A stretch of 64,000 nt of DNA from Parasitella parasitica NRRL 2501 (taxonomy: Eukaryota > Fungi > Mucoromycota). The notes beneath the pieces were generated by a model. It was not told the DNA's origin and did not search any database. It was given only the letters and a program-made list of their open reading frames with translations. The stretch covers positions 84,484 to 148,483 of the forward strand of contig MU619284.1 of assembly GCA_025201805.1 (NCBI GenBank), written 5' to 3'. Shown piece after piece: positions 14,608-33,786 of the stretch. Positions within the stretch are counted from its first letter, which is position 1. Each line of letters opens with the position of its first letter. The translations under genes and the position numbers were made by a program.

Positions 14608-15033
14608 TTAGTAACACGCAGCGGTAGCAGCGTCAACTTTAATCTCTCTGGTCAGTTGGGAAGTCCAAGGGCAGTAGAAACAGCCAGGCAAGAAAGCACC
14701 ACAGGCTTCGTCAAGATGATCATCGACATAAGGAAGGGAAGCATCACAGACCTCAATGGCCATCAAGAAAAAGGAAACAGTGTCAGAGTCATAATGGAAA
14801 TCGTAATGAGGATTATATGGGACTCTGGACTTCTTGATTCTTCCCATGATATGGACACTGTTGGTTTCTTCACCATTCAGGATTCTTCTGGCTTCAGCAA
14901 TTTTAGCATCATTTGTAAGCTTGACGACAAAGTCATTTCGAGAACCAAGAGTACTGAAAGCAAAATAAGCAGTTTCGGCAGCGACGAAAGAGGCAGCAAT
15001 AGTAGCCAACAAGAGCAGAACCAACTTGAACAT
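14608..15033 (-). CDS. Secreted BP74-like / CaM-BP15-like protein, copy 1
   Basis: Signal peptide, then FVVKLTNDAKIAEARRIL, HIMGRI, YNPHYDFH, FFLMAIEVCDA and FLPGCFYCPWTSQLTREI; intronless. Confidence 0.8.
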   Translation of the reverse strand: MFKLVLLLLATIAASFVAAETAYFAFSTLGSRNDFVVKLTNDAKIAEARRILNGEETNSVHIMGRIKKSRVPYNPHYDFHYDSDTVSFFLMAIEVCDASLPYVDDHLDEACGAFLPGCFYCPWTSQLTREIKVDAATAACY

Positions 15034-16785
15034 GTTTTGATAAGATGAAAGATGAGTACAAGTTAAAGTTAAACGAAAGGTTTCTGCTTTATATAACTTT
15101 GTTTTTCTGTGCTCAAAGTAATCGCGACGGATTTATGTTTTGAAAAAGTCTTATGTATCCCAAAAATGAGATGGCAAGGTTGTGTAATCGATCAAGTTTT
15201 GTTTCAAGTACGAGCCTGTCATGCTGTGTACACAAATTCCTTGCTCGATTTGTTTGCTGTTAGTTTACGACGCTCTATGTGCCCATGTTTACTCTTTTGT
15301 CACTGAAACAACTGCATGGGTTGCCTCCTTGTAAATAATGCACGGTATGCGCAAGCGCATAACATCCAAAATTAAAGAGCATGTGTATATAGAGATTGAG
15401 AACGCGCCCGTAATAAAGATAGATCGCTATACATTATCTATTTAGTGATGGAGTTGACATTTACGTAGTTGTTTCAAATGCCAACAAAATATTACTTTTA
15501 CCAATATGGTAATCGTCAACGTACAATTACGCCACATCAACGCATGAATCAAACACATTAGCGCGTTCATCTACGATATGCAGAAATGCATATAATAATA
15601 AACCAAAAAGAAATTAAAACCGGCAGCAAACGCTGGAAGCTGTGGCCCAATTTTCCCTGTTTATTTGCTGTTTCATCTACATGATTATTACTTGCAATGC
15701 CTTATAATATGGAAATAGTGTGTCATGCATACATAAACAGTAAGTTCTGGGTCATCATCTTATCAACAAAATCACGCTATAGCACCACATTTGCTATTTA
15801 GCCGTAAATTACCCTAAATCAGAAGCAAGTGCAGCAGTCAAGTAAATAGTAAAAACAAATTATAAACATCAGCTAATCACCTTTTCAAAGGCCAGAAAAA
15901 AACTAAATCCGAGGATGGAATACAGGACCTTTTCCAAGCAATTATCAGTTGCAATTTTATTTATGTCTTCAAAGATTATTGAAACAAACAGTTCAGTTTT
16001 TGGTTATTACGGCAAATGCTGGTGCCTCTTTATTTTATTGAGCGTTGCAGAAGCATGGAATGTCCAGTTCTAGAGTGTGTAAGATGGATTGAACAACATG
16101 TTGGCTCTAGCTGCTCTGTGTAATACCCCTCATACTCTGATATTTTGGAAAAGTAAAATGTACCGTACATTGTCCAAGTCTGTAGTGTTCAACTCCTTCA
16201 AAGTTTGCAACAGGCTTGTTTGCTTACAGTTTTGATGCACGTAAAGCCTAATAGTTTTACACAGACTTGGTCGATAGGGGTTCTCAAGATCACACCAGAA
16301 TAGTTCTGCTTAACTTATTACCCAGCGAATGAATTTGCTAAAAGGCAAATTTTCAAAACCTTGACGTAATGGCCCTTGAGGCCAAGTCATTGTAGATTCG
16401 ACCTCATACATATTCAAATTGAAAATAGAAGCTACTCGAAAAAAAAAAAAAATGTCCAGAAGCTATATTTAATACGTACATAACTAAAGTCAATAATAGA
16501 TTTAAGACACTAAGCATAATATAACAAGAAAGCTGCGATTGATCAATACGAACAAAGCGCATTTTCATGGCGCTGATGCTTAAAAAAAAAGGTTTTGATG
16601 AACTTGTTACTAAAAATGGAACCGCTGCAAAGCAAACGTAGCAGCTATGCAGGTATCTGACCAAGAAGATCCTTGGCTCCATATGATGTGTTCTTAGGTA
16701 TATTTTGAAATCACATGAAGAAAAAATAATAGTAGAACAACGATTGTCTTTATTTAATCAGAGATGATACATAGCTGTAAATAGA

Positions 16786-17217
16786 TTACCAGAAGGGATT
16801 GCAAGAGGATGAGGCAACATCTGCTTTGATCTCTCTGGTAAGTCTGGAAGTCCAAGGGCAGTAGAAACAACCAGGCAAGAAAGCACCGCAGGCTTCGTCA
16901 AGATGATCGTTGACATAAGAAAGGGAAGCATCACAAACCTCAATTGCGTGTAAGAAAAAGGTAACAGTTGCAGGGTCGAGGTAGAAATCGAAGCGAGGAT
17001 TGTAAGGAGCTGGTCTTTTAATGATTCTTCCCATGACATGGACGCTGTTGGTTTCTTCACCACTCAAGATTCTTCTGGCTTCAGCAATTTTAGCATCATC
17101 TGTAAGCTGGAAAACGAATTCTTGAGATTCATAAGTCTTGAATGCAAAATAAGCAGTTTCAGCAGCGACGAAAGAGGCAGTAATAGTAGCCAACAAGAGC
17201 AAAACCAACTTGAACAT
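16786..17217 (-). CDS. Secreted BP74-like / CaM-BP15-like protein, copy 2 (diverged paralog)
   Basis: Same motif set (HVMGRIIKRPAPYNPRFDFYLDP, AIEVCDA, CPWTSRLTRE); ATG at 17217. Confidence 0.8.
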   Translation of the reverse strand: MFKLVLLLLATITASFVAAETAYFAFKTYESQEFVFQLTDDAKIAEARRILSGEETNSVHVMGRIIKRPAPYNPRFDFYLDPATVTFFLHAIEVCDASLSYVNDHLDEACGAFLPGCFYCPWTSRLTREIKADVASSSCNPFW

Positions 17218-18705
17218 TATTTGAGAAGATAGAAGATGAAGATGAGTCAAAACCAAATGAAAGGAGCATCCATTATATAGTTTTTGCTATGTTCTTTTTA
17301 AGTAACTTCAGTGGATTTATGTTATACATGGTTTTAAATGTCCTAGAGACGACCTTTTTTGTTTTGTTTCAGATGTGCTGTCTCTGCCGTCAACCGATTC
17401 GCTTTGCTATTTTTCTGATTTATGTGTACAATGCGCTATCTGATAACTTTTCGAAGCAAAGTGGAATACTGTAATATTTTGCATAAAGCAAACTATAACC
17501 TATACGTATTTGCTTTTCTTGCTGTTCATGTCCTACAATAGTAATAATATCTACGTAATAAAATCAGAAGTTAAACTATAGTTACGTCGAATACATTCAA
17601 ACACACAAAAAAGCACAAGCGCAAGATTAATACAAGTGAGATGCATTTACATCACCAGTATACCTTTTACCGATATGGTAATCACCACCATACCAATTAC
17701 GCCACTAGAATTGCATGAATTAAATTATTTTAGCAGGTTCAGGTACACGAACTGTTAATAAACTAAAAAGAAATTTAATCCGAGAGATCTTCTAGGCGTT
17801 TCAGGTCAATCTAATAAAGCTGCAGTTCCCATCTCCTTGTTTACTGGTTTTACAATACACATATAGTGTAGACAAAGGTGCCATCGCTTCAACTAAAGCG
17901 CTTCATCGCACCACATGCTACAACAGCATGTATTTATTACGAGGCCCGAAGGCTTTAAGTAAACAAAATAATATAGGACGCGAATATAGTATTTGTACAA
18001 TTCTAATGAACCTTGTCGTCCAAAATTTAGCATGTATGTTGCTGAGATGTACAGTATTGGATGTAAATGCACAGATGTATTTGATATTGCGGAGCAAGTA
18101 GTAGCAATATCAAATACTCTTTTCCATGTGAGATTTGCAGGCACTTTGAACGTTTCATGTAAATTACATTGTACATAAAGACATAGAGTACAGTATAAAT
18201 TTACTCTATTAGAGTTATGCGAAGCCCACCAGCGAAATTTTGGGAAGCCATTGTTTTAGAATGTAGTAAATCATTAATATTCAACATTTAAGAAAAAAAA
18301 AAAAAAAAAGACGGGTACTCAAGTCTAACGCTCAACATGTTTAGATGTAAAGCTGTAGCGCGGATGAAACGACCAAAACAAAAGTTTGTAAGCACAATTA
18401 CGCGATTGAGCTCGCTAAAATGTGTTCATGTCGCGTAAGAGTACGTATGCGGTACTGTTTGATAAATGCGGTGATCGTACTTGTATATTTGTAACGCAAA
18501 CACCTTTTCTAGGTTTTGCCAATGCCATCTATGCTCGATCATCAGAAAAGGTACGTATCATCATAACCTACACCTGAAACAAAATAAACTGCCATACATA
18601 CTTACAGATCCGTCTTTGATGCTTTTGAAAGAAAAACGAATATATATCAGAAGCCATATCTTTTAATTTCAAAATATCCATAAAAAACTTTTATCGTCTC
18701 AAAAC

Positions 18706-19140
18706 ATGTTCAAGTTGGTTCTGCTCTTGTTGGCTACTATTGCTGCCTCTTTCGTCGCTGCCGAAACTGCTTATTTTGCTTTCAGTACTCTTGGTTCTCG
18801 AAATGACTTTGTCGTCAAGCTTACAAATGATGCTAAAATTGCTGAAGCCAGAAGAATCCTGAATGGTGAAGAAACCAACAGTGTCCATATCATGGGAAGA
18901 ATCAAGAAGTCCAGAGTCCCATATAATCCTCATTACGATTTCCATTATGACTCTGACACTGTTTCCTTTTTCTTGATGGCCATTGAGGTTTGTGATGCTT
19001 CCCTTCCTTATGTCGATGATCATCTTGACGAAGCCTGTGGTGCTTTCTTGCCTGGCTGTTTCTACTGCCCTTGGACTTCCCAACTGACCAGAGAGATCAA
19101 AGCAGATGTTGCCTCATCTTCCTGCAATCCCTTTTGGTAA
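18706..19140 (+). CDS. Secreted BP74-like / CaM-BP15-like protein, copy 3 (inverted; copy-1 body with copy-2 tail)
   Basis: Protein is identical to copy 1 up to LTREIK, then ends ADVASSSCNPFW as in copy 2. Confidence 0.8.
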   Translation: MFKLVLLLLATIAASFVAAETAYFAFSTLGSRNDFVVKLTNDAKIAEARRILNGEETNSVHIMGRIKKSRVPYNPHYDFHYDSDTVSFFLMAIEVCDASLPYVDDHLDEACGAFLPGCFYCPWTSQLTREIKADVASSSCNPFW

Positions 19141-28267: not shown

Positions 28268-28827
28268 AATAAAATGTACATATATTGATATTATATTTGC
28301 CTTGTGTGGATCATTCTTCTACTATATATTCACATGCAGTTTAAATATGTATTTTCTGCTCTTTGTAGTTCATGTGATCAATGCTTAAAATTCTGTATTC
28401 ATGTACATGCTTGAGTTGTCATTCGGGTTGTTGCTAGTATCTGCTGATGCTCTTCTGAAAGTATCCTTTATTATTGTAAAGAGGGGGGGAAGGGAGGTAG
28501 CACACACATTCGTCTGTTGCTGGAGCTCTTTGTCTTTACACACATACATTTACACAATGACTAAATTTATGGTGACTCGAGGATTGCATGATTATATTTC
28601 ATTGTTAAACGCCCCATTAGCGTCATGGCTGTATTCAGGAGCAGCTACAAAGTTGTTGTTCTGTGCTTTTGAACACAATCAATCTTCGTCAGTAAAGAGT
28701 GGCCCTACTTTGCATTTCACATGTTCCCTTCAATGAGCAATATTACAAGAAAGGCGCTAATTTACATCAAGTATAAAAAGCTCAGTGCAGAGTGTCTAAT
28801 TTCTGCATCTTTTATTCAAATTCAATA

Positions 28828-29441
28828 ATGAGAAGCATGCTCTTGCCTTTACTAGCCATCTTTGCTGCAATCTCAACCGTTTGCGCGAGCGAGGATTTCA
28901 ACGACGCCGATTTTCAAAATCAAGTACTAGAGACACACAATAAAATAAGAAAAGAGCATAAAGTAGAGCCACTCGTATGGGACGACGAACTTGCAAAACA
29001 TGCTAAGAGATGGGCGAATACATGTGTGTGGCATCACAGTAACGTATGTGTGTACAAATAAGTATCTATGTATAGTTTAATTAATTATCTTTGTATAATG
29101 TAAAGGATACCCGCCCTTACGGTGATAAATGTGGCGAAAACATATCATACGGCCAACCTTCGATTTCCGCCGCCATCGCAGAGTGGCATGATCTTGAAGT
29201 TAATGATTACAACTTTGGCACTGGAGAATCAAAAAATGGAAACGAAATTAGACACTTTACTCAAGTCGTATGGAGGAAAACGCAGAAAGTTGGATGCGCC
29301 CAGCATTACTGCGATAATGATCCAGATACCAATAAGGATTTAGATGGCAATTTCTATGTTTGTAATTATTACCCTCAAGGAAACATAAGAACTGCGGAGG
29401 CCTACACGCATAATGTTTACAGCAGCTCTTATGAGCAATAA
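28828..29441 (+). CDS. Secreted CAP/SCP/PR-1 (Pry-like) protein, one intron
   Basis: Signal peptide, HNKIRKEH, LVWDDELA, GENI, HFTQVVWRKTQKVGCA and YVCNYYPQGN. Confidence 0.92.
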
Positions 29442-30614
29442 CATACACACATATATTACAATAATAGTTGAATAAAAATAATCCTTTCAAGAAGCAGTTT
29501 TTTGTTTTAACTAATGCAAAAAAACTTTTTGTACGATATGTACAATCACATTTGCCACAAGTCCATGCGTATATAGTTCAAATAGTGGTATGATTTTATT
29601 GCTCTAAGAAGGTCGTCTTACCCCTTAATGATGGAAAAGGAGTTTGAGCATAAAATCGGGAAAATCATAAACCCACCAACATCAATACTTGCCCACCCAA
29701 AGCTTGTATTCGACAAAATTAGAAACATCATCATCAACAAAGCATTGCAAAGAGCCACAAAATATCTAGTAAATACGTAATACTTTGCAGCTGTCAAAAT
29801 TACTGGTACAAAGAATTTCAAGATGAAGTATTACCACTTTGATGGTGTTTTTCAGAGCCTTTTTGATGGATTAAGAGCTCAAAATTATACCAAACGACTC
29901 TCCATAACTTGCAGGTGCCATATGATATATTTACAGAAAAAAAAAGATCGACAAAAAATCTATCGATTTTTGACGATTTCGCATGATGGTCCATAAGGCC
30001 AAATCAACAAAAATCACTCTATCTTAAATTTGACCTCAAAAATAAAGTTTTCTGTTATGGTGTATATTAATCGAAAACAACCCCAAATGTTCAACTACTA
30101 TTATGCGATTACCTATTTAGGTTTTGTATATGCAAGAAATGAACTTTTAGCCGAAAAACACGTTTTTTTTCAAATAGACAAATCTCAATTTTTTTAGTAT
30201 AGAATTTTTAATCAAAATGCACAAAAAGATAGAAAACTTGATTCCCTACAAAAATTAATTAAAATGTATTGTATACTTGGCTAGTAAATTTTAGAGATAT
30301 GGACGAAAAAGTGCAAATTTTTTCCAAATTGGTTCCAGGTTTGGTCGTATTCCTCTAATAACGGATCCTAGTGCGGAGAATGAATATTTTTAGCAACAAA
30401 TGAATTCAGTCTGAATTAGGATGCAAAATGCCTCACAAAAGGGCATAATAAAGATTGAGCATCGTGAAGGATTAAAATTTTAAAATGCATGTTAAAGCTG
30501 AAATGGTAGGAATGTCTCGCAGCATTTTAAAAGATCTTTGAGTAGTACATGAGCATGGATAAACATAAATTTATTGAGATTCACATTACGCTATCAGTTA
30601 CCGTATTTCTACTT

Positions 30615-31824
30615 AATAGAAAAATTAAACTTTCAGTTATACACCGTCCATTTTTTAGAGCTTGCCTGGAAAAGTCTTTAAACACACTTGCTTCTACACA
30701 AGTTTACCGTGTGCTATACGGCGATTCTTTTCTTTTTTATAGATAGATGGACGACCTTCCCCACTCCAATGTGCCGTTGATATACTGGCCATATTCTTGT
30801 TGGCGTTCATGCCCCGGTCCCACAGAATTGGACAGTTTTTGCAATCTTGAAGCCCATAAAACCTTTGTCTATATGTAAATTTTAAATCATGCTCTTAACT
30901 CTACATGAGGAACAAACCAATCAAATTTGTGAAAATTAGCCCCTAGTGGCTTTCGTTTATTTCTTACCTTCAATGTATTATATTCATTCACCGCGACAAC
31001 AGCTGTTGTTAACTGTTTTGATAATATTAGTTGGACAGCGGTCAAATAATGTTGAAATGGCTAGCATTTTTCTGGATGGAGGTAAAAAAAATACAATAAA
31101 TCAAACCGGAAGAAACCAACAGAAATAAGAGAAGGAAACGAAAGAGAAGAAAATAAGTAGTTAAGGACAAGTTCAGGCAACATATATGACAAATTATGAA
31201 AAAAGAAGACCAACTGTTTTTGCAGATAACTTTTGATAGACGCAACGAGCAACTTTCTTCCAAAAGAGCCGGTTTACAAGAAATCCAAGTTTACCCCATC
31301 GGTGAAAGTTTCTGTGGTTGTGTTTGGGACGAAGGCTTAAAAAATAAGAAAAATGCTCTCATGAAAGGGCTTCTCTCTGGAACCAGTGGTGTTCTTCCGA
31401 TGTCACTATACTAGAGATCAAAACAGTTAACAACAGCTGTTGTCGCGGTGAATGAATATAATACATTGAAGGTAAGAAATAAACGAAAGCCACTAGGGGC
31501 TAATTTTCACAAATTTGATTGGTTTGTTCCTCATGTAGAGTTAAGAGCATGATTTAAAATTTACATATAGACAAAGGTTTTATGGGCTTCAAGATTGCAA
31601 AAACTGTCCAATTCTGTGGGACCGGGGCATGAACGCCAACAAGAATATGGCCAGTATATCAACGGCACATTGGAGTGGGGAAGGTCGTCCATCTATCTAT
31701 AAAAAAGAAAAGAATCGCCGTATAGCACACGGTAAACTTGTGTAGAAGCAAGTGTGTTTAAAGACTTTTCCAGGCAAGCTCTAAAAAATGGACGGTGTAT
31801 AACTGAAAGTTTAATTTTTCTATT
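30615..31824. repeat. Long inverted repeat: 408-bp arms (30615-31022 and 31417-31824) around a 394-bp spacer
   Basis: The left arm AATAGAAAAATTAAACTTTC...AACTGTTTTGAT is the reverse complement of the right arm ATCAAAACAGTT...GAAAGTTTAATTTTTCTATT. Arm lengths are equal and no mismatch was seen in the parts compared by eye. Confidence 0.95.
31030..31745 (+). pseudogene. Fanzor (eukaryotic TnpB-like RuvC nuclease) C-terminal fragment, degenerate, with a 50-nt intron
   Basis: Ordered motifs: GQR..VEMASIFLDGGKK; VVVFG/DEGLKNK..MKGL.SG; VVAVNEYNTLK (RuvC-II-like); intron 31472-31521; VCSSC..DCKNC (Zn ribbon); LWDRGMNANKNM (RuvC-III-like, NRD Asp replaced by Gly); WSGEGRP. It carries several stops and frameshifts. 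Confidence 0.78.
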
Positions 31825-32283
31825 TTATTTTTCTGAAGGTCATCCAAAGTAATACTGTAAATGTATAGTCATTTCACCGAGTTTGACTGATTTATACATT
31901 GTCTTTTAATGTTGTGGTCTCTGATTATGGTGTGACACAAGTAAGATACTTTTCTATGATATGCTATAATCGGCGCTAATTTAGAAAGATAATCAAAAAA
32001 GATGGATAAAAAGAAAGGGTGTAAAACAAACAAGGAAGAATCTGAGATTATCGTCTTAGATTCAAGCAAGCCTGGATTGATCACGAAAGCATGATTGGGC
32101 CATTTCATATACGGCAATTCAATCACAAGCACTAGATTCGATGCGCTTTTTGTGACTATGTGAAGATGATGATAATCAGTTTTGATGGGAGGTTCTTCTA
32201 TATAAAACATTCCAGATTCTCAAACATCTCTTTCGGTTTCTTATTTCTTTACACAATCTACCTGAACTAACATACAAATCAAA

Positions 32284-33786
32284 ATGCCTGGAAACGATCT
32301 TCAAGCTAATGGCAACAACAAGCCCAGAGAAGCTTCTGCGTCCCCTTATGCATCCACTGATCCCAACTCAAATGTCAACAATTTCAAGATTATTGAATCC
32401 ACTCTCAGAGGTAAGGCTGATAAACCAAAGCAACCCTTATCGCTGTGTACTGATTTCAATGTTTATTTAGAGGGCGAGCAATTCGCAAATGCTTTCTTTA
32501 CCACTGAAATGAAAGTTGGTAAGTGTGTGTTACGCTGGAGGGTTTTTGAAATAAATCCGCCGAGACAGAATACCTAATTTTTCTTTCATTGATTTAGAAA
32601 TTGCAAAAGCTCTTGATAGCGTTGGAGTTGATTACCTTGAATTGACTTCCCCTGCTGCTTCTGAGCAATCCCGTAACGATTGCACAGTCATTTCTAACCT
32701 CGGTTTAAAGGCCAAAATCCTGACTCATGTCCGCTGTCATATGGACGATGCCAAGTTGGCCATTGACACCGGTGTGGATGGCCTTGATGTCGTTATTGGC
32801 ACGTCTAGCTTCCTCCGCGAGTTCTCTCATGGTAAAGATATGGATTACATCACCAAGCAAGCTATTGAGGTAATTACGTATATCAAGAGTAAGGGTCTTG
32901 AAGTTCGTTTCTCCACTGAGGATTCTTTCCGTTCCGATCTTGTTGATTTGTTGAGCATCTACAAAGCTGTTGACAAGATCGGCGTGAATCGTGTTGGTAT
33001 CGCTGATACTGTTGGTTGTGCAAACCCTCGCCAAGTCTACGAACTCGTCAAGACCTTAAGAAGCGTTGTTAGCTGTGATATTGAATGCCATTTCCACAAT
33101 GACACTGGTTGTGCTATTGCTAATGCCTATGCCGGTAAGCTCCAGATCATAGATTTATTCGTAGTATGTGTGGTATTTACAGAGCATTGTGTTACATAGC
33201 GTTGGAAGCTGGTGCTACACATATTGATACTTCAGTTCTCGGTATTGGTGAGCGTAACGGTATTACACCTTTAGGTGGTCTTTTGGCTAGAATGTATACA
33301 GCTGATAAGGAGTATGTCAAGACCAAGTATGATCTTACCAAGATCCGTGAGGTCGAGAACATGGTTGCCAAAGCTGTTGAAGTTACAGTTCCTTTTAATA
33401 ACTATATTACTGGCTACTGTGCTTTCACTCACAAGGCTGGCATTCACGCTAAAGCCATTTTGAACAACCCTTCAACTTATGAAATCTTGGACCCTACTGA
33501 TTTCGGTATGACTCGTTATGTTAGTATCGGTCATCGTTTGACTGGTTGGAATGCTGTCAAGAATCGTGTTGAACAACTTGATCTGGATTTAACTGATGAC
33601 GATGCCAAGGTAGTTACAGCTAAGATCAAGGAATTAGCAGATGTCAGACCCCTTTCCCTGGACGATGTCGATATCTTGCTGCGTTCATACCATCATGCCA
33701 AGGCTGATGGTGCTCACAAAGACCTCTTGGACATGATTGGGAAGCCCGAACACATTACCTCAATTGGATCTGAAGCAACCGCATAA
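32284..33786 (+). CDS. LYS20: Homocitrate synthase, 3 introns
   Basis: FKIIESTLR|[54 protein letters not shown] and [21 protein letters not shown]. Confidence 0.96.

Follow-up and report, generated by a model that had tools for sequence, protein, structure and literature searches.

A perfect 408-bp inverted repeat of a Fanzor-like relic, partly transcribed toward the homocitrate synthase gene of Parasitella parasitica

Fanzor1 and TnpB proteins are omega-RNA-guided nucleases, PpFz of the Mucorales being one example (PMC11423790). In maize, a portion of the MuDR transposon has been duplicated naturally, in inverted orientation, at the Mu killer locus (Muk), whose hairpin of about 4 kb is identical to active MuDR copies and silences them (PMC3440606). 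Hairpin transgenes silence at a frequency of 76% in Mucor (PMC3720535), and both exon-derived siRNAs and hairpin-triggered silencing have been documented in Mucor circinelloides (PMC3720535, PMC4395119).

The locus described here lies in a 64,000-nt stretch of contig MU619284.1 of Parasitella parasitica NRRL 2501 (GenBank assembly GCA_025201805.1, contig positions 84,484 to 148,483), referred to below as the window. An inverted repeat derived from a Fanzor-like relic is found there upstream of the homocitrate synthase (HCS) gene, and an earlier note on this DNA had raised the possibility of a natural hairpin directed against Fanzor. Palindromes may also form after a break or at a stalled fork, giving rise to fold-back and template-switch inverted duplications. 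The best explanation of the locus, with a probability of roughly 60%, is that the 3' end of a dead relic was recently duplicated in inverted orientation in a single step. The structure is a real, single-copy and non-mobile feature, fixed in one strain lineage, with no demonstrated function.

Structure of the palindrome and its support in independent reads

The palindrome comprises the following parts, in window coordinates.

30615..31022, minus strand: left arm, an inverted copy of the relic 3' end, 100% complementary to 31417-31824
31023..31416, plus strand: loop of 394 nt, assembled by itself into a 454-nt contig (30993-31446) whose depth in runs X1 and X3 is that of a single copy
31182..31240, strand not applicable: dispersed-repeat fragment within the loop, not Fanzor, with at least 45 genome matches at 79-100% identity
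31417..31824, plus strand: right arm, the presumed ancestral copy, colinear with the Fanzor part of the loop and with paralog proteins across 31416/31417

The 408-bp inverted repeat and 394-bp loop described in the earlier note were both recovered by a repeat search, which returned two arms of 408 nt each with 100% complementarity and 394 nt between them. The edges are sharp, the match dropping to 10 of 40 identities just outside the arms and 7 of 40 just inside. The right arm was also correctly placed about 460 bp before the ATG of HCS, which is at 32284. The loop, however, had been taken for the middle of the Fanzor fragment, and this holds only for its last 100-140 nt (from about 31280 or 31322 to 31416), as 31182-31240 is an unrelated high-copy repeat. 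The summed k-mer depth of this repeat core was about 48,000 in X1, against a baseline of 113. Matches to the core of about 60 bp are often paired some 335 bp apart (for example L004:1164-1217 and 1501-1558) and often lie 20-330 nt from contig ends; the segment is probably a marker of an assembly-breaking repeat family. A joint at 31240>31786 in the DNA runs was considered as a variant of the locus and rejected, being a 21-nt side match of a contig from the repeat family.

Elsewhere in the window, a second inverted repeat was observed at 14627-15051 and 18688-19112 (425 nt, 98% identity, 3.6-kb spacer), to which internal arms are related at 85-88% (also 16747-17235). This second structure probably represents a DNA transposon whose terminal inverted repeats are long.

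Sequencing runs were searched with sampled 31-mers of the locus, 98% of which were present in five DNA runs from five studies; of the further runs, one contained 88% and another, guessed to be RNA, 53%. Contigs of runs X1, X3 and X7 were then aligned to 28700-33700 (5,001 letters). In both X1 and X3 the left-flank contig stops at 30644, which is 30 nt (k-1) into the left arm, a 454-nt contig holds the loop with 30 nt on either side, and a 408-nt contig corresponds to the arm; the right-flank contig begins at 31795 in X1, the only run for which it is listed, holes among contigs proving nothing. Depths in X1 were 112.6 for the left flank, 115.7 for the loop, 221.5 for the arm and 112.5 for the right flank, and those in X3 were 33.6 for the left flank, 31 for the loop and 57.7 for the arm, so that the arm stands at 1.97 times (X1) and 1.7-1.9 times (X3) the depth of flanks and loop. 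With flanks and loop in single copy and the arm in double copy, the sole possible path is flank, inverted arm, loop, arm, flank, with the loop in either orientation.

The same picture could have come from a misjoin or from a read that was chimeric or folded back, since perfect palindromes are a known class of artefact and the window does contain small N gaps, but these N runs are all far from the palindrome. The contig layout and the depths together exclude an assembly artefact: the double depth of the arm beside single-depth loop and flanks was seen in two libraries, contigs cover all four junctions in X1, both junctions of the loop are crossed by RNA reads, 98% of the words of the locus occur in five studies, and the structure sits in mid-contig. 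This alternative is therefore exceedingly improbable. Every run carrying the locus was identical to the window over 5 kb, and the runs thus represent one strain lineage sequenced independently rather than a population sample.

The polarity of the duplication was approached by tblastn with the C-termini of paralogs. Fanzor homology is colinear across 31416/31417, which identifies the junction of right arm and loop as ancestral; on the assembled orientation of the loop, the left arm would be the derived copy.

The Fanzor-like relic and the absence of related targets

The coding remnant that furnished the arms is the following.

31280..31745, plus strand: decayed C-terminal relic of a TnpB/Fanzor gene, about 140 aa, with FG..KG, NEYNT, CKNC, WDRG-NA-N and GRP

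On its plus strand the right arm reads ...TTAVVAVNEYNTLK... and then ...CKNCPILWDRGMNANKNMASISTAHWSGEGRPSIY... until a stop codon at 31743-31745, displaying the motifs VVAVNEYNTLK ... CKNC..WDRGMNANKNM ... GEGRP, while a VVVFG motif is found in a different frame at about 31305-31337. A six-frame search of the genome with the CKNCPILWDRGMNANKNMASISTAHWSGEGRPSIY piece returned, besides the two arms, about 35 further sites with identities of 30-46%. Compared with paralogs of its own genome the relic gave E values of 8.9e-10 to 3e-9, and tblastn with paralog C-termini gave 8e-14 (L039) and 3e-12, with homology at 31322-31471 and 31581-31733. The nearest paralogs are 42-46% identical to the arm as protein. 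In their visible parts the paralogs display the TnpB/Fanzor C-terminal signature, with IVFGAG..KG, IDEFKTSKTC..C, C..C..WQRDINAS.NM and G.GRP. They pass the cut-off of 26.3 bits for Pfam PF07282 (Cas12f1-like TNB domain) with 38.4 and 34.7 bits, and they match TnpB-like chains in the PDB. Four relic pieces of the window, searched alone in Pfam, gave no match, being too short and too decayed, and the family was therefore assigned through the paralogs. The comparison covered L039 and the visible C-terminal parts of the paralogs, to which the arm corresponds, as most of their bodies read N.

These N-filled bodies (for example L043:2125-4004, L045:1848-4482 and L046:4644-8001) give false long open frames, and frames of 750-1190 aa at paralog loci, considered as candidate genes, were rejected as N runs. 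The visible C-termini are near-identical within two pairs of loci, L043/L044 and L045/L046, which suggests recently active families that appear unrelated to the relic at the DNA level.

Similarity of the relic to TnpB/Fanzor was found over the RuvC-II, zinc-ribbon and RuvC-III region, in keeping with the earlier assignment of the right arm to this region and the downstream end of the gene; of the zinc ribbon only half is left, and the RuvC-III Asp is lost. The RuvC-II Glu is retained (NEYNT), the RuvC-III Asp has become Gly (WDRG-NA, against WQRDINA in the paralogs), and of the zinc ribbon the second pair (CKNC) is kept and the first CxxC is lost (CCLC and CNLC in the paralogs), so that neither an intact catalytic triad in an open frame nor a CxxC...CxxC ribbon is present. 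Several stops and frame shifts interrupt the relic, its frame ends at once after the verified splice described below, and neither RuvC-I nor the N-terminal half of a Fanzor was found at the relic. Judged by its sequence, it is a long-dead fragment of a TnpB/Fanzor gene. The stops, the frame shifts and the Asp-to-Gly change are present in both of the identical arms, and since these lesions are shared, the copy is younger than the decay, as had been proposed for either a duplication or a homogenization.

The genome contains RNAi genes, namely two Piwi-domain, two Dicer and three RdRP loci, so that the host does have the Dicer/Argonaute machinery that the earlier note had supposed, together with RdRP. 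On this basis the locus was proposed to act in trans, as a hairpin giving siRNAs against the mRNA or omega-RNA of related Fanzors, and the proposal has in its favor that an inverted duplication of a transposon-derived gene acts in this way in maize Mu killer (PMC3440606), that the machinery is encoded and that the region is transcribed. What it lacks is a target. When the arm DNA was searched against the 32.8-Mb genome, no other match was returned, even at E<=10, and the longest exact match of the arm to its 14 nearest paralog loci was 14 nt, a length within the 10-15 nt seen with shuffled arms. siRNAs need near-identity with a target over about 21 nt. As nothing else in the genome is similar at the DNA level, the arm cannot guide RNAi against other Fanzor copies, and any siRNAs from the arms would be without a target besides the locus itself. 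An omega-RNA in the arm tail was likewise considered and found without structural support: 31640-31824 folds no better than shuffled sequences (z -0.13, obtained without close family members for covariation). Silencing in trans has thus been largely refuted already, and we regard it as very improbable. If siRNAs were produced from the hairpin, no earlier natural case would exist of a host using a Fanzor fragment as an RNAi trigger, a possibility against which the evidence argues.

The same search bears on a second proposal, in which the unit would be a fold-back, MITE-like mobile element composed of two right ends of a Fanzor transposon. Terminal inverted repeats of 408 bp that include sequence 3' of the nuclease ORF are what such an element would show; nevertheless, only the two arms of this single locus match in the 32.8 Mb, and the genome contains no further member of this Fanzor family that could provide a transposase partner. 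A search of the flanks for a target-site duplication yielded only a chance 'TT'/'TT' and nothing of 3-12 nt. With one copy and no such duplication, mobility of this kind is highly unlikely.

Transcription and splicing toward homocitrate synthase

The genes, introns and promoter elements around the palindrome are as follows.

28792..29441, plus strand: CAP-family (cysteine-rich secretory protein) gene with two exons, Pfam PF00188 on both, its intron spliced in run X7
31472..31538, plus strand: relic intron, 67 nt, GT..AG, X7 joint 31469>31537 (cut +2), reading AAG/GTAAG ... GTAG/AG with slashes at the splice sites
31774..31838, plus strand: 65-nt GC..AG intron, X7 joint 31771>31837 with 3 ambiguous letters, reading CAG/GCAAGC ... 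CTGAAG/G
31941..32001, plus strand: third leader intron, GT..AG, X7 joint 31940>32002
32151..32213, plus strand: HCS core-promoter block and TATA box, conserved in a syntenic relative (L047)
32284..33786, plus strand: HCS gene with several exons, Pfam HMGL-like and HCS_D2 (the query being one exon piece), introns spliced in X7

Transcription and splicing of the palindrome region toward HCS are new in this analysis. Run X7 is RNA, as both HCS and the CAP gene appear in it without their GT..AG introns, and carry-over of DNA was ruled out by this splicing together with zero coverage of the left flank (30036-30644). An X7 contig of 2062 nt, with a mean depth of 1649, runs from 31417 through HCS and lacks the three leader introns. 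The splice-site sequences place the transcript on the plus strand. The intron at 31774-31838 is of the minor donor class (GC..AG) and straddles the outer edge of the palindrome, with its donor inside the right arm and its acceptor outside. An intron of a dead Fanzor gene is thus still spliced, and the remains of the relic are now exons of a transcript that runs into a lysine-biosynthesis gene.

The loop is also represented in X7, by a contig (30993-31446, depth 49.7) that carries 30 nt of arm on each side, and RNA reads must therefore cross the left-arm/loop junction as well. Transcription of the left arm would be diagnosed by three segments: the junction with the left flank (30585-30644), the left-arm counterpart of intron 1, and that of the portion of intron 2 inside the arm. 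RNA contigs covered none of the three (0/3), contigs being unable to prove absence. The bin depths of X7 (565.5 and 1007.3) are fully explained by the loop contig and the 2062-nt contig. Contigs omit rare forms and show neither start sites nor levels, and a contig that spans two features does not prove a single molecule. The region is transcribed toward HCS. The dsRNA of about 400 bp predicted in the earlier note is supported in part: RNA contigs contain the loop and the right arm together with 30 nt or more of the left arm, and none of the left-arm-diagnostic segments. The detectable RNA supports a stem of 30-53 bp and not of 408 bp. This stem was present in every fold of the observed RNA forms when the locally joined spliced leader was folded, and the spliced leader contains 23 upstream ATGs (uATGs). 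These ATGs, the lower depth of the loop and a conserved TATA box downstream suggest that the upstream RNA is either a minor HCS isoform or a separate RNA reading into the HCS promoter.

The syntenic relative has the same gene order (NRPS-like, PXA/PX nexin, HCS, Omp85) with an HCS about 78% identical, and its gap of 1.28 kb between nexin and HCS contains neither the CAP gene nor the relic. Two parts of the promoter are conserved, a 38-nt block at 32151-32188 with 95% identity and the 15 nt around the TATA box, 32199-32213, with 100%; the other intergenic DNA could not be aligned. Since the relic is missing there and conservation resumes only at 32151, the HCS core promoter lies about 330 nt downstream of the palindrome, which is not a conserved part of HCS control. 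Between 28285 and 32151, as compared with L047:7657-8938, about 2.6 kb is specific to the lineage of the window. A second HCS paralog occurs in the same strain, with about 81% DNA identity (window 32792-33563, in reads of X1, X3 and X7), and is weakly expressed, at a depth of 7 against 1649. A paralogous HCS locus also appears to be present in a relative, adjoining MTHFR (L054).

An effect of the palindrome in cis upon HCS, through dsRNA and siRNAs, the upstream ATGs or upstream transcription, is the main rival to a duplication without function. It would involve either a duplex of 30-408 bp diced to siRNAs, whose only perfect targets would be those exons of the long HCS leader that derive from the arm, or an influence on HCS of upstream transcription, of the uATGs or of the stem, which adjoins the first 5' splice site. 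Consistent with this are the RNA contigs, in which 30 nt or more of left arm are connected through the loop and right arm to HCS, the stem found in every fold, the uATGs, the RNAi genes of the host, and the endogenous exon-derived siRNAs and hairpin-triggered silencing of Mucor (PMC3720535, PMC4395119). However, a loop depth of 49.7 against 1649 for the HCS contig makes the long form look minor, the conserved promoter block at 32151-32213 suggests that the main start site is downstream, the syntenic relative has no palindrome, and a single transcript does not follow from a contig over two features. A cis-acting regulatory hairpin is therefore considered unlikely. Its most elaborate version, to which we give little credence, is that the palindrome was co-opted as a module in which a promoter in or near the left arm would drive a long, uATG-rich hairpin leader, and Dicer/RdRP siRNAs would tune HCS; these siRNAs would act against the arm-derived leader exons, possibly with spreading by RdRP into the CDS. 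If co-option were true, a transposon-relic hairpin would be acting on a housekeeping gene and not on transposons.

Age, origin and comparison with known systems

No empty or single-arm site was found among the relatives to which homologs led, all with an HCS only about 78% identical. An exact look-up of an HCS exon gave no match, and run X11, which bears the same species label, was too diverged to align to HCS and gave no single-arm allele. As no strain without the duplication was found, we infer both its polarity and its age.

The age in particular depends on how the identity of the arms is read. Arm-to-arm conversion is known for palindromes, and an older palindrome whose arms were kept identical by intrachromosomal gene conversion would account for 100% identity in a relic that is otherwise deeply decayed. 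Against this, the arms are short (408 bp) and their edges are sharp, with no degraded extension, and the runs carrying the locus are all identical over 5 kb, leaving no variation within the lineage to reveal conversion. Long-term conversion is accordingly improbable in our estimation, while conversion and recency, as causes of arm identity, are inseparable from one strain lineage.

In the preferred reading, an inverted duplication of recent origin, a fold-back or template-switch error of repair or replication would have copied a 408-bp segment, made up of the 3' end of the TnpB/Fanzor relic and about 80 bp downstream, and placed the inverted copy between the CAP and HCS genes, 394 bp upstream of the original. 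A plus-strand RNA, which would begin in or near the inner left arm, runs through the loop and the right arm, loses three leader introns (one of them in the relic) and reads into the HCS promoter and mRNA. The structure would be neutral. Several observations weigh against this reading. The genome encodes RNAi genes, and in Mucor silencing by hairpin transgenes is efficient (PMC3720535); a perfect stem of at least 30 bp is contained in the detected RNA; a hairpin RNA of full length, if diced rapidly, would go unseen, as contigs omit rare forms; and the perfect identity of the arms could stem from gene conversion. The locus nevertheless offers a clean, read-verified and apparently very young interstitial palindrome in a fungal genome, which is modest in scope but useful for studies of palindrome formation and of the exaptation of transposon relics into 5' leaders.

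When compared with Fanzor1/TnpB (PMC11423790), the relic shares a recognizable C-terminal region of RuvC-II, zinc ribbon (TNB) and RuvC-III, contains an intron and belongs to a fungal genome in which about 35 paralogous C-termini occur. Unlike those nucleases, it amounts to about 140 aa with stops and frame shifts, has lost one CxxC pair, carries Gly in RuvC-III, and has neither the N-terminal half nor a detectable omega-RNA structure. As in the Mucor circinelloides work on hairpin transgenes, an inverted repeat is transcribed by a fungus with dcl, ago and rdrp genes; the Mucor cases, however, are engineered constructs or mRNA-derived siRNAs for which small RNAs and targets have been shown, whereas the palindrome, known from DNA and RNA contigs, would have no target but its own leader.

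Muk is matched in that part of a transposon-derived gene has been duplicated in inverted orientation, and in that the palindrome adjoins a host gene and can be traversed by the transcription of that gene, the host being equipped for RNAi. The key difference is that Muk has near-identical targets elsewhere, while the palindrome arms share no more than chance identity with any other copy in the genome; in addition, the arms are only 408 bp long, with a stem of 30-53 bp in RNA. With fold-back and template-switch duplications the locus has in common a palindrome of two perfect inverted arms, a short unique spacer, abrupt junctions and a single copy. No microhomology can be read at its junctions, where any would be hidden inside the arms, and it departs from such duplications in being small and interstitial rather than chromosome-terminal.
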